Below, in pieces: positions 3,839 through 58,324 of a DNA stretch of 64,000 nucleotides. Each line of letters starts with the position of its first letter. Positions within the stretch are counted from its first letter, which is position 1. The stretch is taken from assembly GCF_000315625.1 (NCBI RefSeq), contig NW_005434662.1, positions 216,307-280,306 on the forward strand. Reading direction: 5' to 3'. The notes under the pieces are model-generated. The model had not been told where the DNA came from, did not search any database, and saw only the letters and a list, made by a program, of their open reading frames with translations. A program made the position numbers and the translations under genes. This DNA comes from Guillardia theta CCMP2712. Taxonomy: Eukaryota; Protista; Cryptophyta.

Positions 3839-4141
3839 CCTAGTAATGGAGAACGACGCTGCCGGTGTTTCTTGTGTATATACATTCGAGATTTGTAAAG
3901 AAACGTATCATATTGGATCCCTGACGCGAGGATGGTTGGTTGTTTTCTTAGCACATACGGTAGGAAAGTCAAATTAAGCTATGTCAATGGAAAGATATCC
4001 CCTTCCGCACGTTTGCATATACATTCGCCTTGCAAGATTACAACTGAAAACTGAGCCCAATCACGCCCAACAGCGAGTTTACTAATAAATCACAATGCAG
4101 TTTCGACGTAATTTGTTCTCTTCCTCCCTCTTCGACCCAAA

Positions 4142-4555
4142 TTAGGTGGACTCGATGGGGTTAGTGTACTGCCAGGAGCATTAGGCTCGGACAAACAACA
4201 AAACTGCAGTCTTACCGTGCCCCACAAGTGCTGAACGGGGGGATCCCAGTACTGTCAACCATGTCAGATGCTGTCACAGATGATCTAGGAAAATCCTACA
4301 GTTCCCCAGAAATCTCTTCTTGGAACACCATCCTCCATGGTCAAACGGTCCTCGCGATCAGTGATTGCGGCCTGAATGCACATGTCAACGTTGAAGGATC
4401 CACTTCCATCTCTCACCCAGTGAGGAACTGGAAAGATCCCGGGGGGAGGAGTGAAAACCGAAAGCAACTGGAAGACAGTGTTAGGCTTGTTAAGCTTTCA
4501 AACCCCTTCGATGAGGAGCTCAAGTTGCAACAAACACAGCCCCAGTAGCGAACAT
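4142..4555 (-). CDS. Small (~67 aa) five-exon hypothetical protein
   Basis: GT-AG splicing gives MFATGA|LLSVFTPPPGIFPVPHW|AAITDREDRLTMEDGVPRRDFWGT|YWDPPVQHLWGT|YTNPIEST*, with all introns phase 0. The first exon is uncertain. Confidence 0.5.
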
Positions 4556-5059
4556 GACTTGAAAATCTACTCCTTTCCCAAGAGATATTTTCACTTCGGC
4601 ATAATGCCTGTGCACAAGCTTCTCTGACTAGATCTCTCTCAACTGTTCTTAACACAAAAATTTGAGATCTATTCTTACTTCTCTTCACACAGTCACCATT
4701 TCCCATCACCTGATGCAAAACAAAACATGTTTTGCAAGCTCCCCCTCGCTTCCACTCCCAAATATTTCTCAATGTGATGGGAGCTTTTGCTTGTAGCCTT
4801 CTTCACCTCTCCCATTCGACATACTTCTACATCATACAGTCATGGTCTCTTTGTCTTCATTCTGCCATCAATGCTCTCTTCCGCTCCTCCTTCCTCTACC
4901 TCTCATTCTGTTCCAACCACAACAATCCTCCGCTATGTTCCCCTGATCCGTTCATTCCTTTCTCATCGTCGTGCACCGAGCATCTTGTCTTGCTCCTTCA
5001 GCTTACCTGGAACATGAGAACGCTGCTCTATTTCCGGAATCGTGCTCCTCGTCCCATCT

Positions 5060-5400
5060 CTTACCCGGGACCCGGCCACTGGCCCAGCCTCCGCCACTGG
5101 CCCGGGCACCCGGTCACTGACCACTAAGGCGGCTGGCCGCTGAGTGGCCCGGGCCCGGCTCATCGGCCGACTCTGACGCCGACTCAGCAGCGGCTCGAGG
5201 ATCATGAAGGGGATGAGTTGTTCAGGACCGAGGAGAACCATGTAAGCCACCGTGGGAACCAGCGACAAGGCGCGCACTGACTTGAACAATGTGACTGCCA
5301 GGCTACTACTCAGGGCCGCCGTCACCGGGCCGCGGGCCCGCCCGGCCGGGCGGGTGGCGCCGCACTGATATTAGGCGGGCCCGCCGCGACCAGCCATACT
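5060..5400. other. GC/CCGG-rich intergenic island (similar islands at 30660-31230, 50440-50680, 51130-51300, 58630-58930, 62505-62570)
   Basis: Dense ccgg/ggcc/gtcac/gactc/ctgag words, non-coding, with composition sharply different from the flanks. Confidence 0.6.
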
Positions 5401-5603
5401 TCCGCTGGACTCGTTGAACTGGACAAGCAGAGCTGCAAGGACGACTGCATCAACTACAAGGGTTCGATCCACGGTAATCCATTTCCCGCAACAAGGAAAC
5501 AGTCGGAACTTGGGAGCAAAAAGATCGAGAACAATCAGGGTCATTAGCTATTCGATGGGCATTAGTGGCTAAATGCAGCAGCTGCTTAGACAACTCGTTT
5601 CAT

Positions 5604-7019
5604 CTACTCATTATCGCTGCCTCCCCTGCACGATATTGAGATCGGGATCGGCAAAGAATGACATCAGGTCAGGTACCTGCGATTCTTACTGTCTTCTTCA
5701 TCGTCTCTGCGATCCTCCTTAACATCATCTAGTCGCGAAATTACAACACTGAAATGCTCAACTTCCACGAAACTGTTCACCTTTCTCCCGGGAAGGGGAG
5801 CGATCTCGGCTGCCCTCTCGATCACGATCTCCACGCTCTAAACAGACGTCAAGAGATCGCTCTGCTTCGAGGTTGTGATGTGATAAGACCTGAAGGAGAC
5901 TTCTCACGACGATCGCGACTGTCAGAACTGTCGTGAAACCACATATGAGACCCCAGCAACACATTTTTGTGTAACAAATGGTACCGTTCTCTCCTGTCTC
6001 GAGAACGGTCACGCGATCGGTCACGCGATCTGTCGCGAGATCGGCTGCGATCACGTTTGTCCGAGCCGCCGCCACGTTCACTTTCCTGTCGGGTATCTTT
6101 TAGTCAAATCAACAATACGCACTCAAGTGTAGGTTCAAGCACACGATACAATGTACAAAGTGAGGCAAAAATGGATCCACAAGTGACAACAACAGCAACA
6201 AGAACATTAGGTTGACCTTCACAAGTCGAACTTTTGAGCGATGAAGTTCGGTTCCATCGAGCTTGTAAAGAGCGTCTTCCATGTCTTCCTGTAAACCTTT
6301 GAATGCCACTACAAGAAAGATAAGTACCATGACCCGTGTGGCATATTCAATGACTCCCAGCTTTTCACCACGCTCACTGAAGACATCGGTATAGATAACC
6401 TTCCCTGTTCACAGGTTAAAATGAAAATGAATGCCATCCAGCACTCTACCTGCTTTCCTCGCAAAATCCTTGAGGTCTTGCCAACTCGTGTTCTGGCTCA
6501 GATTTTCTGCGTAAATACGGTATCCGGAACCTCCCTATGAGTGGTATCAGTCAAGCCCTGGGCTGCCAGAAACAAAGGCAGAACTACCCGCGGGCCTCTC
6601 TTTGGAGTTTCCTTCGCGAATTCCACCAGAATTCTCATTCCTGAAGCAACAACTATGATTTGCAAAATACAATAGAGAAATACTTGCCTTCCAAGTTCAC
6701 ACCATCCATTTTGCGGACTGCGTATTCCTGGATCAGCATTAGCAGAAGTAACAAAATCTACGATCGTTCAACACCGCATCTTCTGAATGATCATACTCAA
6801 CGAACGCGAATCCTTGCTTCAGGGAAATATCCCTGCCATCCATTAAGACTAGGTCCTGGGGCCTCGGGAACAAACCTTATCTTTCCAAAACGCGAGAACT
6901 CGTCATCCAAATCCCTTTCACGTACTCGCGAGCTGGTGATAGGTTCACTGACCGGCTAAGAAAAACTCCCTATATGCTCACCTCAGGTGTCCAACATAAA
7001 CCCTACAGTTTCGACCCAT
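5604..7019 (-). CDS. Serine/arginine-rich (SR) splicing factor with RRM + pseudo-RRM + RS domain (SRSF1/4/5/6-like)
   Basis: Exons: [13 protein letters not shown]|[19 protein letters not shown]|[19 protein letters not shown]|[14 protein letters not shown]|MRILVEFAK...|[33 protein letters not shown] is the RRMH signature. RS/RD-rich region at 5760-6080. Confidence 0.93.
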
Positions 7020-8281
7020 AGCGACAGACTTGACCTTTCGAATAAGTCAGTAGAAGGATCTCATGTCTTTTCAACAAAATACGGCCATCCAGCCCACCAA
7101 TCCACTGACTAGCCGATGGAATCATCTCCTCTTTCCACGGAAAAGGAAGAAGAAAGAAAAACATAGTATTATGTCTATATTATGTCTATAGCTTGAAAAT
7201 CAATTTTGGCGATAGAATTAGCGAACGGTCTTATTATCGCTAGATTGAATTTGTACTACACAAACAGATGGTGTCCAGGAACTCTATACAACAAGTTTCG
7301 ACTTGACACAAAATTCTTCTATCTATCAACCGCATATCATGTTCAATCAGTCCTGCAAACAACTCCTCGTTTTGTTCACCTTGCTCGTCCGGACTGACAA
7401 CCACCCCGAGCGTTGACTCCCTGATTTGCCTCTGCTGTGCAGTTTGATTTCGACCTCCCTATTCACCTTGCTGGATGTGCATGCTCAAGTATCGTGTTTC
7501 GATATCGTTCGTCCCTCCTTCCATCTCCCGCTTCTCCTCCTCCCCTCCTATCGACTGCGGATCCTCTCCCCTGCATCTACCTCTGCGGCGGCGCGCGTGC
7601 ACTTTTAAAGTTAAATACTTTTATACGAGAAGATAGTACAATATTTGAACATGTAATATCAGTCATTATAATTACTTGGTACACATCGAGGGCTCTCTAG
7701 AAAATATTCCAATTATATATCGATATATATATTTATCTGTAGGGCAGCTGGTCATGGTGTACCGATTTTTACAAGCATACTTTTTGATTTTGAGCCTGCA
7801 TTTTAACAAAAAAAAAAATTGCTATTTTAAAGAAAGGAACACCATCATCCGCGGTACCAAGTCTACCACAAACGTTTGTGTAACGGGCTCTTGATGCCTG
7901 GAAATAGCCATGGCCGATATAACAAGTGTATGCGCAATTGGAACGAATGAAAGCAGCGAGAACAACATGAAGGGAGGAAAAGGAATTTAGTCACGAAAAC
8001 AAGCGACATGGTGTAATTTGCAGTATCGTGCGAAGAAGCGGATGATACCGAATGGGGGGCTTCGAATGGCGGACAGGAAATGAACTGGACAGAAGGCGAG
8101 ATTTATGGGTTTTGAGTTGCCACTTCGATGGCGCGAGAAGAAAACCAGACATTGAATACACCCTGGAATCTCCTTTGAACTGTTAAAGTGACGAGATGTC
8201 GCTGCGGTGAGTAAATGGCCTCGGTGTAAGGGCATGCCTGAGATTGCTATCAGATTCTCATCTTTCGGCGCTGGACGAAGG

Positions 8282-9330
8282 ATGATTCTGGTAGCAGCGA
8301 TCCTGGTGCTGATCTGTGCTACTGTCGATTGCAACGCTCGTGAAGGAGATGCTTCAAATGTGAGAACGTGCGAAGACTAACTTCCTGAGATCTGACCCGC
8401 TATGAAGGTGGATCTCCTTCAAAGACTCTTAGAGTTGAAGCAGCGAATACAGCGAGAACCCAGCAAGGCTCATACTTCTCATGCACCGTCTGCTATTGCC
8501 CTGGAGAGCCTTTGGTGGAAAAATCCCAGTCTAAAAGCTGGTATTTGTAACTTCAATGCCTAGATTGCACTGATCGATTGAACAGGACTCAAAAGGCTTC
8601 ACGCGCGAGATGAAATGCTTTCACAGCCAGACAACGAGGGAAATGACATCAGATTATATCGTCATGGGGTAGAAGACCCTAACTCAACAACATTCAGGGA
8701 AATCCGTGAAGCTGACAGTAAGAACCGTCGTCAAGACAAGAAACAGCTCGTTTGATCCCCATACGCAGGCATGGTCACTGAGCCCGACGATCTTGTCAAA
8801 CTGGAGGCTGAGGTCCGAGCGTTGCAGTCCAAGATCAGGATGCAAAGAGTGTTGATCAACAATTCTTCGAACGTTTCTGCAGCCGCCAAGAACATTCCTG
8901 GAGAATTCAGGTTGTTCTCACTTACGAACCTGGAATGTGTTGTACCTTGGATGATTGTGCGACTTTTGGTAGATGGATAGAAAACTGGGAACTTCATGGG
9001 GAGAAACCCGTCAATGCAAGCAATGAGACTCTGGGCATGTGGATCTGGTGTAAGAATTCGTCGGACTTTTCGAAGATCTTCTGGCGCAACGGAAGTTTGA
9101 TGGGAGCTCCGGCCATGAACGCTTCCCAGACGTTCCAGACGGTCAGAGGGTGTGTGTCAGTAGTGACGCCGGGATGGATGGACGTGGACGAGGATACGGT
9201 AAGCATCCATTCGGTATTGGCAAGAGGGGAATGAGAGTTTTTGCAGAAAGGGGACACCAAGGAGGAAGAAAAAGTAGAGGATGAAGAGATGCAGGAGATC
9301 AGGTTCTGCTGGCAGCCGTATGTGCTCTAA
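8282..9330 (+). CDS. Hypothetical protein with N-terminal hydrophobic (signal-like) segment, multi-exon
   Basis: MILVAAILVLICATVDCNAREGDASN then a GT donor. Downstream exons overlap ORFs 8771-8980 and 8935-9234. Last exon ...EIRFCWQPYVL* ends at 9330. No family recognised. Confidence 0.45.
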
Positions 9331-9438
9331 ATGTCTAATGGAAGTCTGACAGGAGAAAGAACTGGGATGAGCCGTTCATGACATACGAACCGTGATCCCG
9401 TCGACAACCTCCCTCGTTCGCTCTGACGCTGATCTGTG

Positions 9439-12300
9439 TCAGGCATCCGAGCTCTGTGGGTTGGAACAAGAAGCACTGGAAGGTGCCGTCGGCCTTATCT
9501 TGCTTCCATAACTCACGTTGTACATCCTGCAGGCTAGCGACTGGATCACTTGGAGCATGACAGGGCCGGTGAAGTGAACTTCCCGTTCCTCCTCGTAGCA
9601 TGAAATGACGTGCAGGTGCTCTCGGTCTCGTTTATGGCCTTCATTTGGTACTCTTTCGGGTGGTTCCCGAGCATGGTTGTCTTCCTCGTCTGTGCTCTTG
9701 TCGATGTGGCGACGTTTTACTGGAACTGGTAGAATATGTGAAACTAATCTGCTCCATTCGCACCTTCCTCTTTCCCATCCAGCAGGACCTTGTATGATTT
9801 GTACCGAGGCGTCCACTGCACTGTGTATTCCCGTCCTGCAGGGGCATAAGGAGAACGAGAGGCAGCAGTCTGCTTACCTCTCCACAGCCACCTCTCCTCT
9901 AGCGAAGATTCGTGCCCTTGCAACCGCTTCCCGTCCTCTAGCAGGCTGATGGGCCCTCGTCAGCACCAGCCTAAGCTCCCCATGCCTCCTCACTATTCGT
10001 ATGCTGGCGGGTAGGTGGCGTTTGGAGCCTCGAAGTTGGTTAGCCCTGGGACCTGCCATGGAGTTTGACACCCCTAGTCTGCTAGGATTGACCCACCTCT
10101 CCCACGAAACTTCGCAGGAAAGCCTTAGCGTCATCGGCAGTCACCGTCTGCCTCAGTCGTCAGAGGGGCAGAGAGTTGGCTGTAGGCTGCACCGTCTCCA
10201 CCCCTTTGCGCAGTATGATAGCCTCACGCTTCCGATACGCTTGCAGGTTGATGATGTTCCCCCTGTGTGCCGCAGCGATCAGCAGGAGGAGAGCCTTCGA
10301 AGGCGTGCAGCTGTGAGGGGGAAGTTGACTCGTCCTCACCTGCAGATGAAGACGAATCCGTCCGGTACAAGCACCAAGGTCTCGTTGTTCTTGTCGTATG
10401 GGCTCCTCTGCTCGATTCGAATCGCTTTTCCCTGCAAGGAAGTGGCTGTCCAAGTCCCACTCCTCACCTGCAACGATCAAGTGAGGGAGAAGCGACGAGG
10501 AGCTGAGGGAGTCTGGAGCACTGAGAGCGAGGCCCGGAAGGAGGAGACGAGGGAAGATTGTCGAGGAAGGGCGGGAGAAACAGATTGTACAAAGACAACT
10601 CACCACAGCATATTTGAGCAAAGAATGCTCATCATTGTCGCTCGAACATCGCAGGATATTCAGCAGCTCGGGATGAAACCTGCACGGCCATCAACTCATC
10701 TCGTGGACAAGCAGCTGCTGCACCAGTAGTCTCGGTTCTCTATCGCAAACTCAGTCACAGCAACACAACGCCTGACTACTGAGTTGTCCGTTGCCTGGAA
10801 AGTGAAACATCCCTGTCGAACATGTGAATGCGAGGATTTCAGATTCGACACTCACCCAGCTCGAATGGTACAGCTCTAATACTGTGCCGTACTTGCGGTG
10901 TCGATACCTACAAAGGCAGATGACGACATCTCGCAGAAAGCAGAGGAGGAAGACGCGATGGAGCATGTAGAGGGTAACAGGCATCTCAAGATCTCACGTT
11001 GTGTAGACATCGCCATTTTCGTTCTGCCCTTGCACAACCTGCCACTCAACCCGAGTGTGTAGACAATCGTCGAACTGTTGTAGAAGCGTCATTGTGCCGG
11101 AGGAGCTACGTCAGGAAGCATTACATTCAAGCTCAAACAATTGCCGGCCAGCCTGGAAGTGGATGTTTTGCTGCTGAACCCAGAGGTGACCGCTGCGATG
11201 GTACCGAGCAGTCCTTCCATCTGTCTTTTCTCAGCTCCAAAAGGAGGAACAGAACTCTCTCACAGGCTTGGTCGCAGCGTCAAGGGCTTCGTTGAACATC
11301 CCGCTCACGTAATCTTTGATGATGCCTGCCCCTCTGTGTCACCCGCAGGAGCTACACTAAATTTCTTGTGCACCTGCATGATCCTTGTCGAGGACTTTCA
11401 ATCCGGCCACATTTAGGCTTGACATCATGCTCGTATCAGACTGCTCGTGCCAAAAACTTCACCTGGACGCTCTCAACGCAACCCTGTGATACCTCAACTT
11501 GAGGCTTCGGGACGTCCAAGGGCGCAGACAAGCTCCGCCTGTCAGCGTCATCAGCACGAGAGGCCCATGTGGTCTGGTCAGGACACCTGAAGTTGTACTC
11601 GTGCGAGAAGGGACTTTTAGCTGGCTTGTCCTGGTCTTCGACCTTGTCGGCAGAGACAAGAGGCTCAACCGAGTCTGGAGCAAAGTACTTGAGAGGCATC
11701 CCACAACGTCTATAGAAGAACCTGCTCTCTTCGTATGATTCACGTTCTCCTCTATGATGCGCTGCACAGTTTCCTGACAGACGCAAACCACGTGAGAATT
11801 CTTCAGATTTCACGCTCGGAAGCAAGAACCGTGGAGCCTCGTGGCTCGGATGAAGCCGCCCTCCTCAGGGTCAGGTGCGGGGGAGGCTCCCATTGTGTGC
11901 TTTCAGTGTGCGAGTTGTAGTAGTATGGCAATCTGCTCATGTCGTCGAAGTATTGAAACCATCCGTTCCCTATGTCTATCGGGTCCTCTGCTACCACTTC
12001 CTGCGACTAGAGGTCAGTCCCGTTGGCCCCTTCCACAGGGTGTACGTTACCTGATCTGTGTCGATCGATGCCGATCCTCCTCGCAAGCAAGACTGTGCGG
12101 GAACTACACCTCTGGAGCATCGGATGGCGACGTTGTGCCATGCACACACAACCACCCCATGTGAATGAAGAGCGAGCACGAGGAGCAGGAGCTGGGTGGG
12201 GTAGGAGGGCATGAGCGAGAAGGGTTGACGCTTCTTCACATGAGACTCGTTGGCTGCTCTTGCTTCCCGTTCCTCTCTCCCTCCATCCTTGTCTGCATCC
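9439..12300 (-). CDS. WW-domain-containing protein, multi-exon (boundaries approximate; could be two genes)
   Basis: ORF 11803-11997: IGNGWFQYFDDMSRLPYYYNSHTESTQWEPP is a canonical WW domain. Further spliced exons run through 11459-11791, 11160-11300, 10160-10620 and 9439-9520. Confidence 0.6.
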
Positions 12301-36401: not shown

Positions 36402-39400
36402 CTCCTCCTCCTCCTCCTCCTTCTCCTTCCACGGCTGCTGCTCGCCCCGCTTCTCCACCTTTCTCCTTTGCCTCCCTGCTAGTCTTTCTCGCTCCTCCAT
36501 CTGCTCTTTACTCCTGCTGCTCCACAGAGCGTCGGAGTCAGAGAAAGTCGTCAAGCTTCTCATCGATCACTTTGCCGCTGGGCTTCTCTGGCAAGACATC
36601 GGAGGAGACAGCTCTTTGCACTATGCTGCTGCCGTTCAGAGCGTTCCTTCAGTCCGCACGATCATGCTCGCCAGCAGCACCAGGGGCGTCTCCCCTCAGC
36701 TCTGCCGCAATGCACTGGGCAAGACGCCGCTAGAGCTGACCCACAGCCTTACCATCCGCTCCCTTCTCACCAGAGACAGGAGCAGGTTCCTCGGGTCGAA
36801 GAGGATGAAGCTGTTCCTGTCTACAACAGTCCTGTTCTTCGTTCTCACCCTCGTCCTCGCCAACAGCTACCTGCAGTACGGCGTCTTCTACCCTGTTTGT
36901 GATGCAGAGGAGGCGATCGCTCGGCTGACTTTTCTTTCAGGTGACCTTTGCTGCCGTCCTCTACGGAGTAGGAGCCTTCTTGTCCGTCGTCTACTTCGTC
37001 TACCTGCACTCGGCCAACGAGGAGCTGAAGAGGAGCGAGGACATCATCGTGCTCTTCAAGCGCCTGGAGCTGTACAGCCTGATGTTCCCTCTCCTCATGC
37101 TCTCCGTGCTCGCCGCCATCCACATCGAGCACAATCGAGGGCAGGTGAGCGAGTACTTCTGGTCACTCTTCCTCCTCCTCCTCTTCGTCGCGAGCTGCTC
37201 CGCCGTCTCCTTGGAGATCTCCCTCCTGCACGCTATTCCCATCCCCAACTTCCTCCGCGTCCTCGAGGCTCTCATCGTCTTCATTCTCCGCTTCATGGAG
37301 ATCTCTTCCCGCGTCACCATTTTCGGCCTCGTCCTCTTCGAGTATACCATCTGCCCCTGCGGCTCCTCGAGCTACAAGTCGCTTCAGGACTGCTACTGCT
37401 ACACTAACATCCTGACCCCGCTGTTGCTGGTATGTCTCATCTATCCATCCCTGCTCTCTCCTGCCCCTCCTGCCCCTCCTGCCCCTCCTTCCCTTCCTGC
37501 CCCTCCTGCCCCTCCTTTCTCCTTCTTCATCATCCTCTTCTCCTTGCGCATCCTTCTCCATCCTGATTTGATGTCTTCTTCTTCCTTCTTTCATCCTCCC
37601 CTCTCCCCCTTCCCCCCCTACTAGAGGATATTAGGAATAGATTCAAACAGGATTGAAAGACTAAAGTGGGTGTCAAGAATATCGTTTTTCTCCTTTATTG
37701 AATATGAACAGGCTCCTCCCGCACTTCATCTGACTGCTCCCACAAGGTCTTCGAGGCTCTATTGCAGATGTACATCTGGTTCGGAATAGAGAACCCCTCC
37801 TCCAAGTACAAGAAGGACACCCTCCCTCCCTCCTCCTCCCGGGAGATCCTCCGAGGTTTCTTAAATCTCCTCATCATCCAGAAGGGCAGGCTCGTCGGCA
37901 CCAACTTCTCCCGCTACTTCGGCTACAGCAGAATCTCTTCCGCTGCCATCGTCGGCGAGGTCCTGCTCCCAGACGTCAAGCTCATCCTCATCGTGCGCTC
38001 AATCCTTCACTTCGGCCTCCTCCTCCTCCTCCGTGTCAGCGACGGGACCAAAGAGCTCATGGTCGCTTCCAAAGTCCCCAACTTACATCTAGAAGCGGAG
38101 AGGTCCATCTTCGAGATGTAATGCTGACCCTCTTCAATTCTCCTTTCCTCTCTCCTTGTCTTCCTTCACTACATCCTCTCTTTGATTTCTTTCCTCCGGC
38201 CCTCGCCCTCCTCCAACTTCTCCTCTCTCCCCCTGATCTCTTTTTATTCAACTCGCCTTTCCCTTCCTGCTCCTGCTATTTCTTGTCTATTCCTCCTCTG
38301 CTCTCCTCTGCTCTCCTCTGCTCTCCTCTGCTCTCCTCTGCTCCTCCTCTCCTCTTCTCCTGCTCATGACACCACCATCAGGTGCATCTACTTCGTCGCC
38401 TTCAGCAGCGTTCTCCAGTGGATCGTGCTGTTCGCACGCATTTGGATCTGGAACCGCATCATCTCAAGGACGAGGGTCCACGAGTCGCAGGAGAAGAGCG
38501 AAGACAAAGGCACAGCCTACGATAACGCCAGTCTCAAGTCGCTCGTCAACCGAAGGGACCCGCGATCCCTCAAGATCATCCGCAGCTTCCGGAAGGAAAC
38601 GATCATGAAGAAGCGAGGCTCGATCTCCAGATTCAGCGACTACTCCTCCGTCAATGGCAGCTGGTGTTCTGCCCGCAACGACTCGCTGCGCAAGAGCGAA
38701 AGCTCGTCCTTCTCCGACGGCCTCGAGTCTTACAACGTCTTGGTCGCCATGAAGAAGCGCCACGGCATTGAGGAGAAGAACAACCCTGTTCCAGGGAGGG
38801 ACGCGGGTTCAGCTGATGTAGAGCTGGACAACAAGGGACAGGAGGGGGGGACGAAGGCAGCGCTGAAGCTGAACGGACACAGGGAGGACGGGGAGAAGGA
38901 GCCGAGCAAGAGCGACGGCGATGGCAAGATACGGGATGAGACGGAAGAGGAGGAGATGGTGAAGGCGGGGATGGAGGGGATGGGAGAGGCAAGGAAAGTG
39001 CTGGGGCTGAACGTGGCAGGTGAAGACTTGGAACAGAACCTGAGCAACAACACCAGCTATCATGACGACGAGATACAGCCGGCGGCAACACCAGCAGCAG
39101 CAGCGGCAGAGGAGGAGGATGCAGAAGGGGAGGAGGAGAAACTCATGCCGCCGGGGCTGAACGGACTCGAAGACTCTGATGGAGTGATTGGAATTGGATC
39201 CCGCAAGGAAGAGCCGGGCGAGGACAAGCCTGAGGCCCCTGCTGCTGCCCGTCAGCCGAGGGGCAGGCGATCGGCCGTCCCAAAGAAGCGAGGAGAAAAG
39301 AGATTGGGAAATAGCGGCACTGCAAATGATGTTTTCCATGGCGAGGCGACTGCCATGAAGCTGAATTCCGTGGAGGAGAGAGTAGGGAGGGGCAACGGAG

Positions 39401-40002
39401 TGCCTAAGAGGAAACAGGTAAGAAAGGCAGGCTCCTCCTCCGCTTTCTCTCCCCTTGAGCCGAACAGGAGCAAGCAGGAACCTCCTGCTCAAGACGACGA
39501 AGAATCGAGCACGTTGCTCAAGACTGTGACGAGGGCAAAGCATTCTCACAGCAGGCGATCTAGAGGAAACAAGGTTGACCCCAAGGTCATTCCCTTCATC
39601 TCGCAGACGCCGTCGCTAAGGGTTCAGCGGATCCTTCATCCCGATGTGACTGAGCTGGGAGACAGCCCGGCCTCCGGCCCATCGACATCTCGAGTCGTCG
39701 AAAGAAGATCCAGCCTGTTAGGTGAAGCTGCAGGGACGATGAACGGGACGGCGGATCTAGTGTTGGCTGTGGTTGGGAACGGAGGCGCGAAGCTCAAAGC
39801 ATCTGCCGATGGCAAGGAAATCCTCCCTGACAGAGCAGGGAGTACCGCGCAAGGTCATCGCAGTTTGACTCGAGACATCAGCAGGAGGAGGAAGAAGCTG
39901 CTGGAAATGTTCCCTGAGTCTTCCTTTGTGCGCTCCGTGGTCTCCAAAGGCAACAACCTTGACCCAAGCGTACCGAAGACCAAGTACTACATGCTGGCAT
40001 GA
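31592..40002 (+). CDS. Large multidomain membrane protein: PDZ-like, C2, ankyrin repeats, EF-hand pair, XK-related multi-TM domain, long disordered tail
   Basis: PDZ-like GIHFSFNQISRELRVSAVLDPPHG...GIVRGDVVV (~32170-32430). C2 GVLTITFVTGRN...NARWNSNVYVP..WFNL. Ankyrins GHTPLHIVC, RLPIHIAC, LPLHFAA. EF-hands DEDSSGRLELPE and DTDG|NLELDFPE. TM block at 36800-38460. Confidence 0.8.
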
Positions 40003-40304
40003 TGCAATTAAAGTTTCAATGTGTTTGCACATGTTTGGAATTCTCAGACTTAGGTTGTCGTTATGATATATTGCCCCTCTATTCTCCGATTTCAGTGTGC
40101 AGCAAGTTTGTAGCTATGAGGTGAGACTAGAGAATCGTTGAGCGAAGGTGACGTAGATGGCAATCAATTTCTTTACAGTTGATCTGCTCTACAAAGAATC
40201 AAAAAGAAAATGTACCCTGTGACATTGGTCGAAGGGTTAACGAGTTTGTATCTTCAACTCATGAGCGTCTTCTACATACCCTTCTTCTCATTCACACCTC
40301 CCCT

Positions 40305-40322
40305 GTCCTTGTCCTTGTCCTT

Positions 40323-40372
<50 letters not shown>

Positions 40373-40380
40373 CCTCGTCG
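40305..40380 (+). repeat. (CTTGTC)n/(CTCGTC)n hexamer microsatellite, intergenic
   Basis: Direct read. Confidence 0.95.
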
Positions 40381-40867
40381 TCTTTTCCTGTCTGTTTGTT
40401 GGGTTCTTCCCCTTCACTCCCTTTCTTCAGATGAAGTTTGACCGATGTAACGGTAAACAACGGCGAATGAATAGGCACACTGACGGGTAGGGTAGTCATA
40501 GGATGTATTTGAAGGGTGGGGTATGTTATATTGAGGGGGTGTTTGATAAGTTAAAACATCAATCAATCCACGGGTGGTGCCATTATACTGAGGGGTAGGG
40601 TTGTAAAAGACGGTAGGGTAGTAGGGTGGTTCCTACGAACGAAAGGGCAGGCGATGGCGAACGGGGTACGGAGCGGAGCGGAGCGGAGAGGAGAGGCGAG
40701 GAGGGACAAGGAAAGGCGAAGGGCATGTAACAGAGGTGACAAGTTAAGAGGCGATGAGGGAAGAGGAGAAGCTAGTGGAGATCAGGAAGGGAAGGGAAGG
40801 GAAAAGGAAAGAGATAGGATCTGATAGCGGTAAGGAGAGTTCTCGTCCGCTGACAACCTTTCCAGGC

Positions 40868-43800
40868 ATGATTGAGGGAACCATTGGTCACTGACCAGAA
40901 CAAAATAACCTAGTTGCTGTTGTGGAGGTCACATCTTGCAGTAGAGCTTGCAAAGATGTAAGCTGTGCATTCTTCCCGAGCTGCCCTTATGTTTTGTTCC
41001 AGGGCGTCCATGACACCCAAAGAGATGTTTTTGGGTGCCATGGATCAGGTAGACAAGGTCTTGGAGAACGTCTACTTCAACTGGCTCTTGCTCGGTACTA
41101 CTCGTCCTCTCATCTTCTGTTCTCAACGTCCCCGAGCTTGTCTCATGCAAGCGCGACGCAACTGTCCCCTCAGACTCGCATCTGTTTTTCTTCCAGGAGC
41201 TGACTGTTAGCTCAGGAGCAACATCCTTTCATATGATTTTGCAGAGCATGAGGTTCCTTTCTCAAGATCCTCTTTCTTCTATCTCTGCCCTTCAGGACAA
41301 GTTCGACTACTACATGATATGGGTGTACACGGGGATTATGTGCCTTCGCATCTGGGGCAAGGGGTTGATCTTGCATCCCACAAGTTTCCTGAGGACAGGG
41401 TGGTGTTACCTGGACCTGTTGGTCGTGGTCTGTGCCTGGCTAGATCGTGTGTACCATTTTGGAAATGTCATGTTCTTCATGGTGAGACGACGCGGCATTG
41501 CCGTCTCGAGTCGTTACCGCCTTGACCTATGTCGCAGGTTCTGAGAATCCTGAAGCTTGCAGCGGAGTCAAACCTCGTGCTGTTCTCTCCGCTGAGGGTG
41601 ATCACTCGGACGCTGCTGATCGGCATCCCGAGGGTGATGGTTGTCTTCGGTATCCTCTTGTTCGCCATGGTTTTCTTTGGCATCCTGGCAGTATCCCTCA
41701 TCGGCAACACCGGAGACTTTCACAACCGGTGCGGCATCTCTTTCTGCCAGCAAGTGGACGCGACAGGGAAGTGTCTATTGGAGTCATGGCAGGCCATCGT
41801 CCCCGCGTACATCTGCCGCCAGGACAAGGATCCCATCGCCAACCCGCAGGGAACCTGTCCTCCGACCCTCGTCGGCAGCCCCATGAAGCTCAACTCGCCT
41901 GCTACCAACACTGAGTCTGTTGGATCAGTGCTGGAGGCGACCAAGTCAACTGTGCGATGTCTGGGCCCGGACCTGCAGCTGGGAAAGCTTGACCAGGAAA
42001 CGTTTGCAAGGTTTGAGGGGTTTCCTCCCTTCACTGAATACGTTCCTGTCAACTACACCCAGTGGCCGGCAGTGACAGATCTGAACTGGGACAGTTTGAA
42101 AGCTGCGTCCATCCCGATGTTCGCGACCTTTTACAAGACCGCCTGGGTTCAGTTCTCGGACTACTCCAGTCAAAGCACGAGTGGATTCATCGTGATCGCC
42201 TTCATCGGGCTCATCATTCTCATCTCATACTACCTGCTCAACCTTACCATCGCGATCATGAACCTTAACTTCTCCGATGAGATGACCAAGGAGAATGCCT
42301 TCCTTGAAGCATCCAAGTCCTCAGAACCGCAAGAGGTCTTCTAGTCTTGTCCTCTTGGCTTCTATTTTGACTTGATGCTCTTCGGCAGGGAGGAGCAGAC
42401 GACGATGACGGGGAGGAGGAGGAGGAGGATGATGATGATGACGAGCAGGATTTGACTAACTTATCGGGACCTCGGCAGGATCTCCTCGCCGCCTACAGCG
42501 GCGACGAGTATCCATGCTGCGGCTATGCCTCGTTTCCCATCTACTACCTTGAGGGACCGATAGGGGCAGGGCTTGATGCTGCCGGGAATTTCATAGCTGG
42601 GAAGATCAAAATCCTTGGGAAGATCAAGGGCCCAGTGTACTCGGCCAAGCTCGCTGTCTGGAGCTGCTTCAGGACTTGCTGCGCGAGCTTCAACAAGTTC
42701 TCCATCTACCTCGTCATCCCCGAGGCCGAAGGCCTGCAGACTCCCTTCATCAAGATCTGCTACATCCTCATGTTCGCCTACCTCTGCACCCTCGCGGCCC
42801 AGAACGACACGATCAACCAGTAGCCCTCCCCTCTTCTCTCCCCCAGCTCGCACTCACCTCAACCGGCAGGTACAAGTGCGGGTGCAAGCAGATTGACGAC
42901 TTGTCACTTGCCGATCGATGCGCCATCGGCCCTAAGGTGCTGGACTTCCGTTGGGACGCCTGTTGTAACGATGAGATTGTTGGCTGCAGGGCCCGAAGGA
43001 TCTAGAGTGCAAGGCCGGCTTCACTTGCCATGGCGGATACTGCACGACAGAGTGGTCAGGAGAAGCTTGTGTAAATCCATGGGACAACCCTCGGCTGCAG
43101 GCAACTCTACTTCTTCCTCCTCCACTTGCTCCTTCTCGGCTTCACCATTCTATCCCCTCCCTACTTGTCGCTTCTTCCTGTCCTCTCTCTTTCCTGCTTT
43201 CTTCATTGTTCTCGTTCATTCCTCCCTCCTCCCTCCTCCCTCCCCGCTTCTGTCTCTCTCCCTGCCTGCCTGCCTTGATGCCTTCCTGCCTTCCTTCCTT
43301 CCTGCCTTCCTTCCGTACAGTCTCCTTCCCATCCACCTCGTCTCTTCTTGCTCAATCTCGTGGCCAGACTATCCCGAGCATGACAGCTGCTGCTGCTGAC
43401 TGGACAAGTCGGAGGACATCGTGGTGCAACTACAGCACCATGTTGCACTACGTGATGCTGGGATGGGCCGGCTTCTTCCTGTTTGAGACCATCGTGACCT
43501 ATGTCGGGCACCAGGCACGTGAAGCATCAGGTGGTTGGGAGGATGACAGTCGTTGGCAGGGGCCGATGAATTTCCTTACGGTGAAGAGAAAAGTTCCGGA
43601 GAAGAAAGGATCGAAGAAGATGGTCGACAAGGTTCGTGGAGGGAGGATTGATGATAACATGGATTGAGATGAGAAATGATGGTGATGGTGATGGTGATGG
43701 TGATGGTGATGGTGATGGTGATGGTCGTGTTCTTGTTGGTAATGATGATCATGATGATCAGTGTCGGTGGTGATTGAGATGATGAAATCGATGGAGATGA

Positions 43801-46800
43801 TGATTATTGCAGACATATCCCAACGTGACCAACATCTTGGATGCGGTTTGCAATCTTGTTACCGTCATCGGCATCTTGTTGACAGAACTCAACACAAAAA
43901 CACAAGTGCGGCTTTTTTCTGCTCTTGCTCCTGCTCTATCCTTCGTGCAACCATTCCTGCTCTTGGAACTATCGTCCTGCTCCAGCCCTTCTGCCCCTGC
44001 CCCTGCCCCTGTCCCTGCCCCTGCCCCTGTCCCTGCCCCTGCCCCTGCCCCTGCCCCTGCCCCTCTCTTTCTGCCTGCTCTTTGCCTGCTTCAGAAGTTT
44101 GCATTGTCGTCTTCACCCCTTCAAGTCCCTCGCACTTCCTGACGCCTGCTGTCAGATCTTCGACGCCAACATTTCGCTCTTCTGGCGTACGGGGGACCCC
44201 GCGGGCTTCAAACTTTTCTCACCCACAGGCCCGCGGGTCCTCAAGTTCGTCAGGCTCGCCATCGTCATCAAGTTCTTCTACCACTTGATCTTCGCCGTCC
44301 AGTCCATCCCCATCGTCGCCATCATCCTCCGTGGCTTCCGCGGGAGCATGAAGATCGTGGTCGCCGGCATCCAGCTTTTCATCCTGGTCTGGTTCTTCAT
44401 GTTGCTGGGGAGGGAGATCTTCCTCTACTACGGGCCGGACGAGGGCTGCAACCAGTGCCTTGCCTGCGAGTACAAGGACGCGACTAGAACTTGCGTCGAC
44501 CAGTGCTCGGGGGCACCCTACAAGGGATGCTCGACGTACAAGACTGAGGGGGACTGCAACCTGAACATCTGCAAGTGGGCGAACGCGTCGTCCGCCTGCA
44601 AGTTCGACAGGTCCAAGGGAGGAGTCTGCAGGTCCAACCAGGCGAGCACTCACTTCTCCAGCACCTTCTCCTTCGACACCAACGTCAACGGCCTCCTCCT
44701 CCTGTCAGAGATCGTGATCGGGTCGAATTGGTGAGGGCTCTCTCTAGTTTGCGCCCCCTCTTTCTCTTTCCATCACGCTCTGCTCTCAACGCTCTGCTGT
44801 CCCTTCTCCTTGCTCCTCGGCTTCTGATCTTACAACCGTCTCGCCCCCACCTCCTTTTCTGCCATTCCCATCAGTGGGTTTGTCTCCGCTTCTTCTCGTG
44901 GTCCTTTTACGATCCCTCTGCTCTTTCCGCTTCCTCTCTCCCAGCTTTTCGTTGTGCTTCCTCTCCCTCTCCTTCTCTCTCTCGTTCCTTCCCACCATTT
45001 CCCTCCTGTTCTCTTCCCCTATCATTCGCTTAGTCGCTCTTTTGCTCCCTCCCACCACAATGGCTCTGTTAGCAACCTCACCATCATCCTTATCGCAGGT
45101 ACGACAACACAGTCGCAGGCGTGCAGAGCCTCGGGTATGGTGGTTTGGTCTTCTTCATCATCTTCTTCTACATCGCCAACTATCAGTTCTTGAGAATCTT
45201 TGTGTGCATCATCACCAACAACTACGAGCTGAAGGAGGAGGAGAAGTTCATAGCGCAGCAGATCCTCTTGGACCACAAGTTTCATGACATCTCCAAGAAG
45301 AGGGTGAGGAACGCGGAGGAGAAAGAGTTCATGGAGGGGAACTACGAGAGATTCTCCTTCAACCACTTCTACGAGCGGCTGCTTCGCGGTGCCCAGATCT
45401 CGTTGCGAGAGATCGAAGCCGCCAAGGAAGGAGAGTCGATGGACTACCTCAGCTCGGAGAGAGAGAAGAAAAGCTTTTTCTCCCTCTTCTTCTCGAGCAA
45501 GAAGAAGGAAGATGTCGTGGACGGAGGCGAGCTCTTGGATGGCATCCGGCGAGTCGATGGGATCGAGGAGGACTCGGAGGACGAGGAGGAGGATCCTAAC
45601 ATCGTGTACTACACTCAGAGTATGATAGTAACCCGACTGTCGATCAACAAGTACGGCAAGTTGGATGGGGGAATCGACATCGACGAGGCTCCGAGCTTGC
45701 TGGAGATCGCGATTAGCTACGTGCACAAGCTTGCTTTCTCTCCGTACTTTATTATGATTACCTTCATTGTCATCATCGCGAGTGTGGTGACTGCAATGAT
45801 GTCATGGCAAGGCAACACGGTGAGTTGTGTATGTTGATACTGATGCTGATATTCACTTTGATACTGGTGGTGATGATGGTGATGGTGATGATGATGATGG
45901 GGCTAGACAAGATTACACAAGGACATGAGAATGTAGATGTGATGATGGCGTATCACTACGATGTGTTCACATAGTTGTTGATGATCCAGCTGTAAACCTT
46001 GGTGATGAAACAACGTCCTGACTGAATGCTTCCCTTGCAACAGGACACGGAGTATCTACTCAGCCTCTTGTTCCTGGCCTTCTTTGTCTTCGAGATGGCA
46101 GTGAAGATGATAGCGCTGGGCATGAACGGATACTTCAAGGACGGCTGGTGCAGGCTCGACTTTCTCCTCGTTGTCCTTCAAATCCTGGACGTCGTTGAGA
46201 ACTCCTTTCACTTTGTCTTCAAGGAAGGAGATCCCAAGAGCGCGATCCTCAAGGGCTTCCGCGCCCTCCGACTTGCCCGCCTCATCGCCGTCATCCGCAA
46301 GCTCCCGGCCACCGGCACGCAGATCGACAGCATCGTGGTGGGGGTGGACACGATCATTCAGGCGCTCGGCGCGAGCATGCCGGCAATCCTGACCCTCGTC
46401 GTCGCACTCGCTCTCTTCATGCTCATCTTCGCCATCATCGCCATGGATCAGTTCGCCGGCTTGTTCTACGCCTGCGATGAGACGGGAGGGGGCCCGGCGT
46501 TCGACATCCCTCAGTTCGGCGCTCTTCGCAACAAGACCCAGTGCGTTGGCATGAGCCTGCGGGCCCCTACGGCCTACGCGGACAACAACGAGTGGCACGA
46601 CGGCATCACGTCCTCCTTGTTCTCCTTCCCTGCTCCTCGTACCTGGTCGACTAACTCCCTCATCCGCAACCAGTTCACTTTCCAGGACATCGGGGACTCC
46701 TACTACACACTCTTCAACCTCCTCCTCCGCTCCAACATCGGCCCGACTGTTCAGATCCTTGCTAGCATGACTAACAGGGATCAGGCGCCTGTGGAGCTTC

Positions 46801-49800
46801 ATAGCGTTCCTAGCGTCCTCTACGTGATCATCTTCCAGATCCTGCTGGGTATCTTCATCGGGCAGGTCGTGATCGGAGTCATCCTGTCCTACCTTCGCAT
46901 CAAGAGCGGCATCGCCTTCTACACAGCCGACCAGCTGTCATGGCCGGCGACCAAGAAGGCCATCAGGTCGATCCCTTCCGTCTTCGGCGACACCTCGGAC
47001 GTGAAGGAGCCGGAGGAGGAGAACAAGTTCCTGCTGGTGCTCAAGACGATCCAGTACAAGTGCCTCCTCCTCATCACCCATTGGAAGTTCATCCTCTTCA
47101 TGGACCTCATCGTCCTCCTCAGCTGCGCGACCATCGCCACGACTCACTTCGGGGCCTCGCGGCAGCACACGGAGATCACATGGTACATCAACCTGGCCTG
47201 CCTCATCCTCTTCATCCTCGAGGCCTTTGTCAAGATCATCGCCATAGGGCCCATCGGCTACTTCAGGAACCCTTCCACCTGCTTCGACTTCCTCATCACT
47301 CTCGTGGGAGTGCTCGAGCTCATCGTCCTCCCTCGCTACGGGCTCGAGCTCGGCCTCGGCTCCCTCAGGCAGTTCCGTCTGATCCGCATCGGCAACAGGT
47401 CCCAGGTCTTCGTCACGATGCTCCAGTCCATCGCCGCGAGCTTCCCGCAGTTCTTCGCCGTCGTCCTCCTCCTCGCCATGCTCATCTTCATCTTCGGCGC
47501 CATCGGTACGACGCTCTTCCCCGGCCTTCGCTACGGCATCGCCAACCGGCCATGGTCGGGGACTGACAACCTCGTCTCCACCATGGTCCTCCTCTTCACT
47601 TTCTCCTCTGGCGCTGGCGGCCCAGACCCCAAGACTACATGGGGAGACATCGTGGTGGACGCGAGCATAGCAGCTCCCTACTGCACACCCTTCTCCTGGC
47701 TGCCTAACGGAGATGTAGACAGTCCCATGGGATGGTACTCAGGAGCAGGAGGGGCGCAGATTGCTATAGCGGACTGCGGGAGCAGAACGATAGCCACCAT
47801 CTTCTTCTTCATCTTCTGCTTTATCTGCAACTACATCATCCTTCCGTCCTTCGTTGCCTCCGTGATCAACTCCTACTACGAGGCCAACCTCGACAAGTAC
47901 TCGTTGATCTCCAAGGAAGAACTGCTCAAGTACAGGAAGTGCTGGATCAGCCTGATGGACAAGACGACGGGCTACCTCAAGGTCCCAGACGCGCAGAAAG
48001 ACAAGTTCATCACCCTGCTGATGAGCCTCGAGAGCGAGGATTGCTCGCTCGGTTTCAGCATGGACGACAAGAAGAAGTTTGATATTGCAATGAGGTACAT
48101 CAAAGACAAGAAAGTGCTCGAGATCAAGGAGACAGCCGCGATCTTGTTCTCCGTGAGAGAGAAGTGCCGGCCAGTCACGATTGTCGACCATCTGCTCAGA
48201 CAGAAGGTGAGGGAGGGTGGAGATAGTGGGTGGCGAGAAAACTTCGAGTGGCGCGAGATGGGGGAGGGAAAGAAGGAGGAGGGAGAAGAGAATGGAGGAG
48301 GGAGAAGAGAATTGGGAGGAAGGGGTTGGAGGGAAACAGGAGAAAAACGAAGTAGCAGGAGGAGAGGAGAAATTGAAGGGAAGGAGGGGAAGTGCAGAAA
48401 GAGTAGGGAAAGGAAAGGAAGGGAAGGTAGAAAAGATGATCTGATGGATTTGTAGGCCCTCGCCCTGCTGATGTCTCGAGGAGGGAACAAACTTCCGAAG
48501 CGACAGAAAGCGATCGCCGGCAAGCTGCATGCAAGCCTGGGGCTACCGCCAAGCTACTTCGAAGCAGCGTGAGTGGAGAGGAGTAGGAGGAGCTGAGAGG
48601 AGGGGACGGCGGGAGCAAGGGAGCAAGGGAGCGGGGGGTGATGAGTTTGGGTTTGCAGGCTTTCGGGCAAGAAGACGAAAGTCAAGAAGAACAACATCAT
48701 CTACTCTTATAACATCTTCGTCATGATCGGTCAGTCCCCGCCTACCTCGTCCCTCCTGCCCTCTGACGACCTGCGACCTTGCTAGACCAACTGGCGAATC
48801 TCGATGATGAGGCCAAGATGCTGGATCCGAAAGCGGTGACCCCTCCCCTTCCTGTCCCTGCTGCTCCTGTTCCTGCAGCTCCTGTCCCTGCTGCTCCTGT
48901 CCCTGCTGCTCCTGTCCCTGCTCCTGCCTCCCTCACGCGATGACCAGGCCAACACCCTCAAGCTGCTGGTGGAACAGAACGATGAAGATCTCTTCACATA
49001 CTTTGAGGTTTGATGGCGCGACGGCCGCTGCCCCATGGAGCCATGGGATGACGACGGTGCTGCAGGAGTTCGTGGAGGCCTCGGGGGAGGACCTGGAGGA
49101 GAAGGACAAGAGATACTACAACCTGCTCGCCTTCGCGCAGAGGTGACGGCCGGAGCTTCGCCGCCACCGCCGCCTTGACGTCCCCCGTGCCATTGCAGGG
49201 CGAAGGAGATTGCAAGTCGTTCCATGCAGATGGAGAAGAAGATGGATCTCCAGGCAACTTCCGTCCATTCCTCCCCCCCGCCCCCCNNNNNNNNNNNNNN
49301 NNNNNNNNNNNNNNNNNNNNNNNNNNNNNNNNNNNNNNNNNNNNNNNNNNNNNNNNNNNNNNNNNNNNNNNNNNNNNNNNNNNNNNTTCCTCTCGCTCCT
49401 CCTTCAGCTATGCATCCCGTTTCTATCGGGCTCCTTGCGTTCCTCCTCCCTTTTGCTGCGTGATCCCCCCCCCCCCTCCCCGTCACCTTCGACCTCTGAC
49501 CTCCTCGATCGCAGGGTGAGGGCTCGGAAGCGGAGGACCTCGGACCGGACGAGGACGAGGACGGCGAGGATAGGAAGCAGGCGGCGCTGGCAACGGACTT
49601 GAAGTTTGCTTCAGAGGTACGACAGCTTTGTGCCGCTCATCCTATCTCATGCTTCCCTTCCTTTCAGGTTCCTAAGGACGGGGAGGATCTGGGCAAAGCG
49701 GACATTCTGCCTACAGGTGACCCGAAGCCTCCGCCCTGCTCTCCCTCCTTCTTGTTCTTCCCAGTCCCTTTCCCTCACAGCTACCCTCCGTTCACCTCCG

Positions 49801-50037
49801 TTGGACTTGTCTCTGTCTCCCTCCCTCCCTCCCTCCCTCCCTCCCTCCCTCGCTTCTCCCTCCTTCACTCCTTCCCTCCTTCACTCCTTCCCTCCTTCCC
49901 TCTCTCCCTGCCCTCGTTGCCGTGTTTCCTCTCCTCCTGCTCTTTTTCTGCACTTGCTGTATGCTGACTCCACGAGTAGAGCAAGAGGTCATTGACCTGA
50001 CCAACTGGAAGGCCTGCGAGGAGGTGACCCACTCGTG

Positions 50038-50108
<71 letters not shown>

Positions 50109-50115
50109 ACTGTTA

Positions 50116-50150
<35 letters not shown>

Positions 50151-50286
50151 ACCGCTACCGCTACCGCTACCGCTGCTGCTGCAGCTGCTCGTCGTTCTTC
50201 CCCCCTCACACCTATTGTGACAGTGCGGCGAGCCGGTGGAGATCGACTGGGACGTCTGCCCCCAGTGCAACGCTGCTGTGCGCTAG
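40868..50286 (+). CDS. Four-domain (4x6TM) voltage-gated Na+/Ca2+ channel superfamily protein, atypical pore; C-terminal zinc ribbon
   Basis: Repeated S2-S3 motifs (FLRTGWCYLDLLVV; GYFKDGWCRLDFLLV; GYFRNPSTCFDFLIT). S4s ILKGFRALRLARLI and GSLRQFRLIRI. S6s YYLLNLTIAIMN, FLRIFVCIITNNY, ILPSFVASVINSY. End: WKACEE|CGEPVEIDWDVCPQCNAAVR*. The gene spans an N-gap. Confidence 0.9.
43678..43725 (+). repeat. (GATGGT)n intronic microsatellite
   Basis: Direct read. Confidence 0.95.
43992..44063 (+). repeat. (CCCCTG)n intronic microsatellite
   Basis: Direct read. Confidence 0.95.
48851..48925 (+). repeat. 15-mer (cctgtccctgctgct)n intronic minisatellite, ~5 copies
   Basis: Direct read. Translates antisense as GTGAA repeats. 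Confidence 0.85.
49287..49386. other. Assembly gap (100 N) in a channel-gene intron
   Basis: N run. Confidence 1.
50037..50190 (+). repeat. (CTCCTG)n/(CTACCG)n intronic microsatellite
   Basis: Direct read. Confidence 0.95.

Positions 50287-53230: not shown

Positions 53231-58324
<5,094 letters not shown>

Follow-up and report, generated by a model that had tools for sequence, protein, structure and literature searches.

A four-domain Cav/Nav-type channel gene of Guillardia theta with a predicted Thr/Ser/Ser/Ala selectivity ring

According to the textbooks, the preference of four-domain channels for Ca2+ or Na+ is determined by a ring of acidic or lysine-containing residues in the pore, and most of the present knowledge of this ring was gained with the guidance of natural variants. 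Read from domain I (DI) to domain IV (DIV), the ring is EEEE or EEDD in the Cav channels, DEKA in Nav1 and DEEA in Nav2, and EEKE or EKEE in NALCN. Here, a multi-exon gene for a four-domain channel of the Cav/Nav type was analysed, which is encoded in a stretch of 64,000 nucleotides of the cryptophyte Guillardia theta CCMP2712 (contig NW_005434662.1, positions 216,307 to 280,306 of the forward strand), in the following called the window, whose own numbering is used throughout. The ring positions of this channel are Thr, Ser, Ser and Ala, i.e., they are all uncharged, and both the identity of the protein as a four-domain channel and the uncharged state of its ring are very likely correct. As judged from the sequence, the protein is probably best read as a voltage-gated, monovalent or non-selective cation pore of low field strength.

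With Cav1, Cav2, Cav3 and the protist E/E/E/E channels the predicted protein shares the four repeats of six transmembrane segments (6TM, S1 to S6), a pore built of a P1 helix, a loop and a P2 helix, Arg-rich S4 segments in DIII and DIV and a T..Q..W motif in the III-IV linker, and Cav channels give the best match among the PDB sequences (1e-36) and a structural match with Z ~22. It differs from Cav in the ring itself (T/S/S/A instead of EEEE or EEDD), in the loss of the Thr two residues before the ring residue (position n-2, the ring residue being n) in DI-DIII, in the absence of a Trp in DIII, in the charge-poor S4 segments of DI and DII, in the replacement of the S6 Asn by Arg, Gln or Pro and in Cys-rich inserts in DII loops. 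With the Nav channels it has in common the Ala at the ring position of DIV and acidic outer-ring residues at n+4 in DII and DIV; near the beginning of the III-IV linker, a hydrophobic triplet with a subsequent Thr resembles the pattern of their inactivation gate, and Nav1.7 is the best structural match (Z 25). However, only the DIV Ala coincides with a DEKA, DKEA or DEEA ring; DI-DIII carry T/S/S and neither Asp, Glu nor Lys, the basic residues are found at n-1 and not at n, and DIV contains a 7-residue insert. NALCN and the fungal Cch1 resemble the protein in their four domains, in some charge-poor sensors, in a non-canonical filter and in the structural match (Z 19-22), whereas the EEKE or EKEE ring of NALCN has no counterpart in a ring without Lys or Glu, the sequence similarity is 1e-14 to 1e-16 compared to 1e-36 for Cav, and the clade of the window gene does not group with it. 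Finally, unusual rings such as D/D/K/D, S/S/K/E, E/S/L/L and T/E/N/D were described for protist channels (Pozdnyakov et al., 2018; PMC5824947). These channels also form lineage-specific clades with non-canonical rings and partly charge-poor S4 segments, but each motif named there retains at least one acidic residue. The S4 strings of the ten Guillardia sequences in that study do not match the window gene, suggesting that its clade is not covered there. An uncharged ring is not mentioned in a selectivity-filter classification from 2023, and neither this clade nor a ring of four neutral residues was found to be described in the literature searched.

The ring was mapped by phmmer against PDB sequences, by three separate MAFFT alignments and by two AlphaFold2 models. 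The matches to Cav2.2, NavPaS, Cav2.3 and Nav1.7 (1e-36 to 1e-33) align the ring residue by residue. The MAFFT sets comprised 68 full-length channels and fragments (FFT-NS-2), 39 DIII-DIV segments and 24 DI-DII segments, with 65, 29 and 12 other four-domain channels for comparison, respectively, and all three resulted in the same ring columns, anchored by a Phe at n-6 and a Trp at n+2, the latter not in DIII (Table 1). The original prediction, in which the filter had been aligned by eye, is thereby upheld by phmmer, by MAFFT and by the predicted secondary structure: alignment of the P-loops with Cav, Nav, NALCN and other four-domain channels places T/S/S/A at the canonical ring, without a Glu or Asp of the window gene. 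Among the ~65 full-length four-domain channels aligned that do not belong to the clade, none has a ring that is free of acidic residues at all four positions. The further peculiarities predicted around the filter were found as well. A Lys in DI and an Arg in DIII immediately precede the ring residue, with Lys or Arg at n-1 in nearly all clade members (six out of six sequences in DI, nine out of ten in DIII). DIII carries an Ile in place of the Trp, which is not present in any member of the clade, and the alignments support seven inserted residues between the ring Ala and the Trp of DIV. The insert was also considered as an unspliced mini-intron, which was rejected as it is only 21 nt long and conserved in intron-free open reading frames (ORFs) of orthologues.

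The structural models place the ring residues in the loops between P1 and P2. In the AlphaFold2 model computed for the product of the DIII-DIV exon (predicted local distance difference test, pLDDT, 82; predicted template modelling score, pTM, 0.78), whose first four residues are intron read-through, the DIII Ser lies within a predicted four-residue loop (232-235) between P1 (220-231) and P2 (236-244), and the DIV Ala (residue 528) follows just after P1 (514-525), succeeded by an 8-residue excursion to Trp 537 at the start of P2. The second model covers DI-DII of the Geminigera cryophila orthologue P0177 and has an overall pLDDT of only 57.9, for which reason just its pore helices (pLDDT ~70-85) were used, and these for secondary structure alone; P1-loop-P2 is predicted here with an Asn (DI) and a Ser (DII) inside the loops. 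A re-entrant pore between S5 and S6, composed of P1 helix, short loop and P2 helix, is thus predicted for DIII and DIV in the window protein and for DI and DII via the Geminigera orthologue. The fold of the DIII-DIV model matches solved Nav and Cav structures (Foldseek E 6e-18), with VIA-align Z scores of 25.2 for Nav1.7 and 22 for Cav1.2 and NALCN. Four homologous 6TM repeats in one polypeptide are seen from Pfam Ion_trans matches to the DI, DIII and DIV exons and to three to four stretches in the full-length orthologues. A feature search in the ESM Atlas returned generic ion-transport clusters only, and the GPHH and Ca_chan_IQ domains were not found by Pfam in P0210, P0177 and P0006 (E<=0.01), where no motif search was aimed at the Cav features concerned, i.e., the beta-subunit AID of the I-II linker and the C-terminal IQ/calmodulin site.

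Judged by the sequences aligned, the uncharged ring is a family trait of a divergent clade that is seen only in cryptophytes and in unassigned marine-metagenome contigs. A word-index search yielded four relatives with 44-47% identity, and an exhaustive HMMER search only ~8 related clusters before the scores dropped to the level of four-domain channels in general. Ten sequences form one clade with two subfamilies, A and B (Shimodaira-Hasegawa-like approximate likelihood ratio test, SH-aLRT, 100; stem of 1.4 changes per site), which includes the window gene, a paralogue in the same genome, P0177 of Geminigera cryophila (MMETSP0799), which is the sole named relative of the channel protein, and marine metagenome sequences. 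The nearest outgroup row, P0020, was rejected as a member, having Arg and Asp at the ring positions of DIII and DIV. Within the clade the ring position is occupied by Thr, Asn or Ser in DI, by Ser, Ala, Gly or Thr in DII, by an invariant Ser in DIII in all ten sequences and by Ala, Gln, Thr or Asp in DIV. The rings of subfamily A, which has the DIV insert, read T/S/S/A in the window gene, T/G/S/Q in P0210 and N/S/S/A in the Tara Oceans contig L015, with an Ala at the DII position of P0003; those of subfamily B, without the insert, read N/S/S/A in P0177, N/T/S/D in the same-genome paralogue and S/G/S/T in P0006. The filter is therefore conserved among the orthologues as uncharged throughout, apart from the one Asp in DIV of the same-genome paralogue; no other member of the clade carries an acid in its ring, and an EEEE or EEDD ring does not occur in the clade. 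This paralogue is located on the minus strand of contig C30 (~152600-158600; loci L002, L004 and L009-L014) and is an orthologue of P0177 (~50% identity). P0210 is a single ORF of 1864 aa filling a contig of 5.7 kb, which is consistent with a transcript because the genomic copies have introns. The L015 gene (~3487-10028) consists of ~5-6 long ORF segments compared to at least 13 in the window, showing that the intron density differs strongly between relatives.

These data also bear on the question whether the gene is decayed or mis-assembled, so that its odd residues would be pseudogene, annotation or alignment artefacts. A comparison of the DIII-DIV exon among three closely related marine variants yields a dN/dS of 0.08-0.20, i.e., the close marine orthologues are under purifying selection. 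Moreover, all homologous segments of the window gene are open and in frame, both introns read in detail have GT-AG boundaries, the 2.2-kb exon is without interruption, orthologues with 44-49% identity over 600-700 residues have the same ring, and the Geminigera homologue originates from a transcriptome. An assembly gap of 100 N (49287-49386) in the C-terminal region speaks for such a defect, which altogether is scarcely credible. Signs of decay, which would have undermined the prediction, were not seen and the gene appears intact.

The prediction that the filter has no acidic residues holds for the ring but not for the pore mouth, where Asp remains at the outer ring of DII and DIV and in the DIV insert. 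In the alignments the Asp at n+4 in DII and the Asp after the Trp in DIV correspond in position to the outer ring found in Nav and Cav channels, and subfamily B keeps Asp or Glu at n+3/n+4 in DII, DIII and DIV. The Asp within the insert is conserved in all four insert-bearing sequences, namely the window gene, P0001, P0002 and P0210, and the insert is predicted by AlphaFold2 as a hairpin excursion with pLDDT ~83-86. It might be argued from this that the channel is Ca2+-permeable by a displaced acidic site, in which the insert Asp together with the outer-ring Asp/Glu at n+3/n+4 replaces the canonical ring. The invariance of the insert Asp, the confident prediction of a hairpin that connects the ring Ala with the P2 Trp and the acidic residues of subfamily B are in line with such a site. 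However, subfamily B lacks the insert, and one to three carboxylates located above the constriction are equivalent to the outer vestibule in Nav channels, by which no Ca2+ selectivity is conferred, making a displaced Ca2+ site unlikely.

Apart from the filter, the conservation within the clade is highest in IV-S4 and at the start of the III-IV linker (0.64 each), followed by III-S6 (0.52) and III-S4 (0.50), with a mean of 0.40. The filter loops themselves have a conservation ratio above 1 and the S6 helices are above average. Conservation in the clade peaks in the first 20 residues past DIII S6 (III-IV linker, 46900-46965), and a hydrophobic triplet and a Thr just after DIII S6 resemble in sequence the pattern of the Nav inactivation gate. 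The basic residues of S4 number four to five in DIII (a Lys and four Arg) and three to four in DIV (all Arg), while DI has only an Arg and a Lys, compared to four to five Arg in the DI S4 of canonical channels in the DI-DII alignment, and DII has Lys, Arg and Lys that are irregularly spaced with a gap. The conserved S4 charges of DIII and DIV, the S6 helices and the III-IV linker argue, at the level of sequence, against a dead scaffold and in favor of a gated channel. By this and by the acidic residues left at the pore mouth, the functional part of the original prediction, a non-selective, possibly anion-permeable or non-conducting/sensor-type channel, is partly weakened.

The permeation mechanism proposed here is therefore put forward tentatively, its probability lying somewhat below even, as a voltage-gated pore without a high-field-strength site that would pass mainly monovalent cations with little selectivity for Ca2+; identity and uncharged ring taken jointly with this mechanism are about evenly balanced. 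The protein would still be a conducting voltage-gated channel, driven chiefly by the sensors III and IV, with a filter that no longer possesses the carboxylate site of high field strength. In place of this site, backbone carbonyls and small hydroxyl side chains would coordinate the ions, and cations would still be attracted by the Asp residues remaining in the outer vestibule (DII n+4, DIV n+4 and the insert Asp of DIV). The affinity and selectivity for Ca2+ would be low and the passage of Na+ and K+ weakly selective, suggesting that opening of the channel would depolarise the membrane instead of generating a Ca2+ signal. Selectivity for cations is possible in 6TM-type pores without acidic filter residues, as in TPC and TRPM4; the filters of the 6TM-type cation pores TPC and TRPM4/5 are lined by uncharged Asn, Gln and Ser and by backbone carbonyls. 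As 2x6TM dimers or tetramers these channels are not close relatives and may serve as a working analogy only.

Several observations weigh against a cation-conducting pore of this kind. The n-2 Thr and the DIII Trp brace canonical filters, and with the loss of the former in DI-DIII and of the latter the filter may have a geometry other than that of the templates. Moreover, the conserved Lys/Arg at n-1 in DI and DIII contribute positive charge, as does an Arg in DII S6; in most members this Arg stands in place of the conserved S6 Asn, which is exchanged for Gln in DIII and for Pro in DIV. Together with a ring without any acidic residue, these basic residues might generate an electropositive pore that is permeable for anions. 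In the solved Nav and Cav structures, however, the n-1 residue lines the pore with nothing but its carbonyl, the side chain being turned outwards from the lumen, the acidic residues remaining at the pore mouth do not favor an anion-permeable pore, and no anion-selective member of the Cav/Nav/NALCN superfamily is known, by which anion permeation becomes very unlikely. Finally, the conservation of the P1 and P2 helices falls short of the clade mean (0.25-0.37, ratio 0.62-0.94), while the 29 other channels of the same alignment have the opposite pattern with P-loops above average, which could mean that conduction is not the function under selection. This below-average conservation would fit a sensor-type reading, in which the protein is a non-conducting voltage sensor or scaffold that signals by voltage-driven conformational change, perhaps via its long C-terminal tail with the zinc-ribbon-like motif; the coupling of Cav1.1 to RyR1 is a precedent for conformational signalling by a voltage sensor. 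The altered filter would fit such a role as would S4 and the III-IV linker being the most conserved parts, and C-terminal motifs and the zinc-ribbon-like tail are kept across the subfamilies. The conserved S6 helices and filter loops, the invariant DIII Ser and the conserved motif of the DIV insert speak against it, and no natural four-domain channel is known to be purely non-conducting owing to its filter, so that a pure sensor is rather unlikely.

The gene model is based on tblastn, for which the exons were searched singly or via orthologue proteins, with the Geminigera transcript P0177, the metagenome proteins P0210, P0006 and P0003 and the ORFs of L015 as queries. The four P-loop peptides on which the prediction was built are all present on the plus strand of the window, although the coordinates given for them were shifted by 1-4 nt and hence out of frame (Table 1). 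They are located within one intact multi-exon gene with Ion_trans matches and repeats mapped by exon, as expected for the predicted four-domain Cav/Nav-type channel, and every tblastn-mapped coding segment is open and in frame. Splicing out the phase 2 intron in DII restores the frame and the Trp and agrees with the unspliced orthologue P0003.

Table 1. Coordinates of the channel gene, its P-loops and its ring residues in the window (HSP, high-scoring segment pair).
Feature	Position	Strand	Evidence
Whole channel gene, likely start Met to stop	41010..50286	+	At least 13 coding segments; orthologue-guided tblastn; span includes a 100-N gap
DI S2-S3 and start of S4	41215..41517	+	Pfam Ion_trans 1.4e-07; HSPs to P0177, L015
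DI S4-S5, long turret, P-loop, S6	41538..42335	+	Pfam Ion_trans 5.6e-10; phmmer match to Cav3.3 DI
P-loop peptides	DI 42117-42146, DII 44702-44731, DIII 46710-46742, DIV 47592-47642	+	Exact placement in window
DI ring residue Thr, conserved Lys before	42138-42140	+	phmmer aligns with Cav3.3 DI Glu; canonical Glu column in two MAFFT alignments
DI-DII linker and DII S1-S3, several exons, Cys-rich S1-S2 loop	42386..43908	+	HSPs to P0177, P0210, P0006
HSPs for DI-DII linker and DII S1-S3	42386-42817, 42871-42924, 43008-43178, 43356-43625, 43810-43908	+	tblastn
DII S4, S5, Cys-rich turret, P1 helix; exon end within Trp codon	44150..44730	+	HSPs with 43-44% identity to P0210, P0003, L015; splice donor read
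DII ring residue Ser	44723-44725	+	MAFFT column of the canonical ...TGENW Glu (two alignments); P0210 position aligned with Nav1.7 Asp
Intron GT-AG, phase 2, interrupting the DII Trp codon	44731..45098	+	Boundaries read in sequence
DII P2 helix, S6, II-III linker, DIII S1	45099..45819	+	HSPs to P0003, P0210, P0177; DI-DII alignment
Intron GT-AG, phase 0	45820-46043	+	Boundaries read in sequence
Single long exon, DIII S2 to DIV S6 and proximal C-terminal domain	46044..48215	+	Pfam Ion_trans 1.6e-60; PDB sequences Cav2.2 and NavPaS at 1e-36 to 1e-35
DIII ring residue Ser, Arg before, Ile for Trp	46731-46733	+	Aligned with Cav2.3 DIII Glu; invariant column S236
DIV ring residue Ala	47613-47615	+	Aligned with Ala of the NavPaS DIV TSAG motif; canonical Glu column in two MAFFT alignments
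DIV n+1 Gly, then 7-residue insert	47616..47639	+	7-column gap in all other channels aligned
DIV insert Asp; P2 Trp	47625-47627; 47640-47642	+	Alignment
Distal C-terminal exons, conserved acidic helical motifs	48477..49209	+	HSPs to P0210, P0177, P0006 at 48477-48770, 48939-49007, 49060-49209
Last exon, second half of CxxC...CxxC zinc-ribbon-like tail and stop codon	50221..50286	+	Translation; HSPs to P0177, P0006

The N-termini of the orthologues match 41004-41102 by tblastn. A low-complexity ORF of 606 aa directly upstream (38182-40002, plus strand), which has no homology to the channel orthologues and is presumably part of a neighbouring gene, was thereby ruled out as the N-terminus of the channel. 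Microsatellite-like repeats, visible as repeated amino-acid runs in ORF translations, fill the introns and the 5' flank of the gene (40290-40400, 43576-43816 and 43990-44090). Cys-rich inserts of ~60-90 residues are found in two extracellular loops, the S5-P1 turret of DII (~44400-44650) and the DII S1-S2 loop (42871-43178); the turret insert is common to P0003, P0210 and L015 and absent in the aligned subfamily B sequences P0177, P0006 and P0008. At the extreme C-terminus, a zinc-ribbon-like CxxC...CxxC motif (~49980-50015 and 50221-50283), which is followed by the stop codon, is kept in both subfamilies (window gene, P0177, P0210 and P0006). Such a tail is unusual among four-domain channels, and zinc-ribbon Pfam matches on P0177 are sub-threshold only; a Pfam search of the Cys-rich loops and the C-terminal tail gave nothing at threshold. 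The intron inside this motif is mostly a (TGC/TCC)n microsatellite (~50035-50200). The window contains two assembly gaps of 100 N, the one already mentioned and another one at 56706-56805; since the former interrupts the coding sequence for the distal C-terminus, it could conceal a further exon.

As a summary, all four ring residues of this channel are exchanged for small uncharged ones, which is held under purifying selection, while two of the voltage sensors remain good and the gate is conserved. The clade might therefore be regarded as a natural experiment on what backbone carbonyls, outer-ring acidic residues and an inserted loop achieve alone. That a conserved natural clade with a wholly uncharged ring conducts anions or serves purely as a voltage sensor is doubtful; if true, either function would be unprecedented in the Cav/Nav/NALCN superfamily. 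The cryptophyte lineage is already known for its anion channelrhodopsins, and the clade described here adds a hitherto undescribed lineage to the channel repertoire of the cryptophytes, whose electrical signalling is barely studied.

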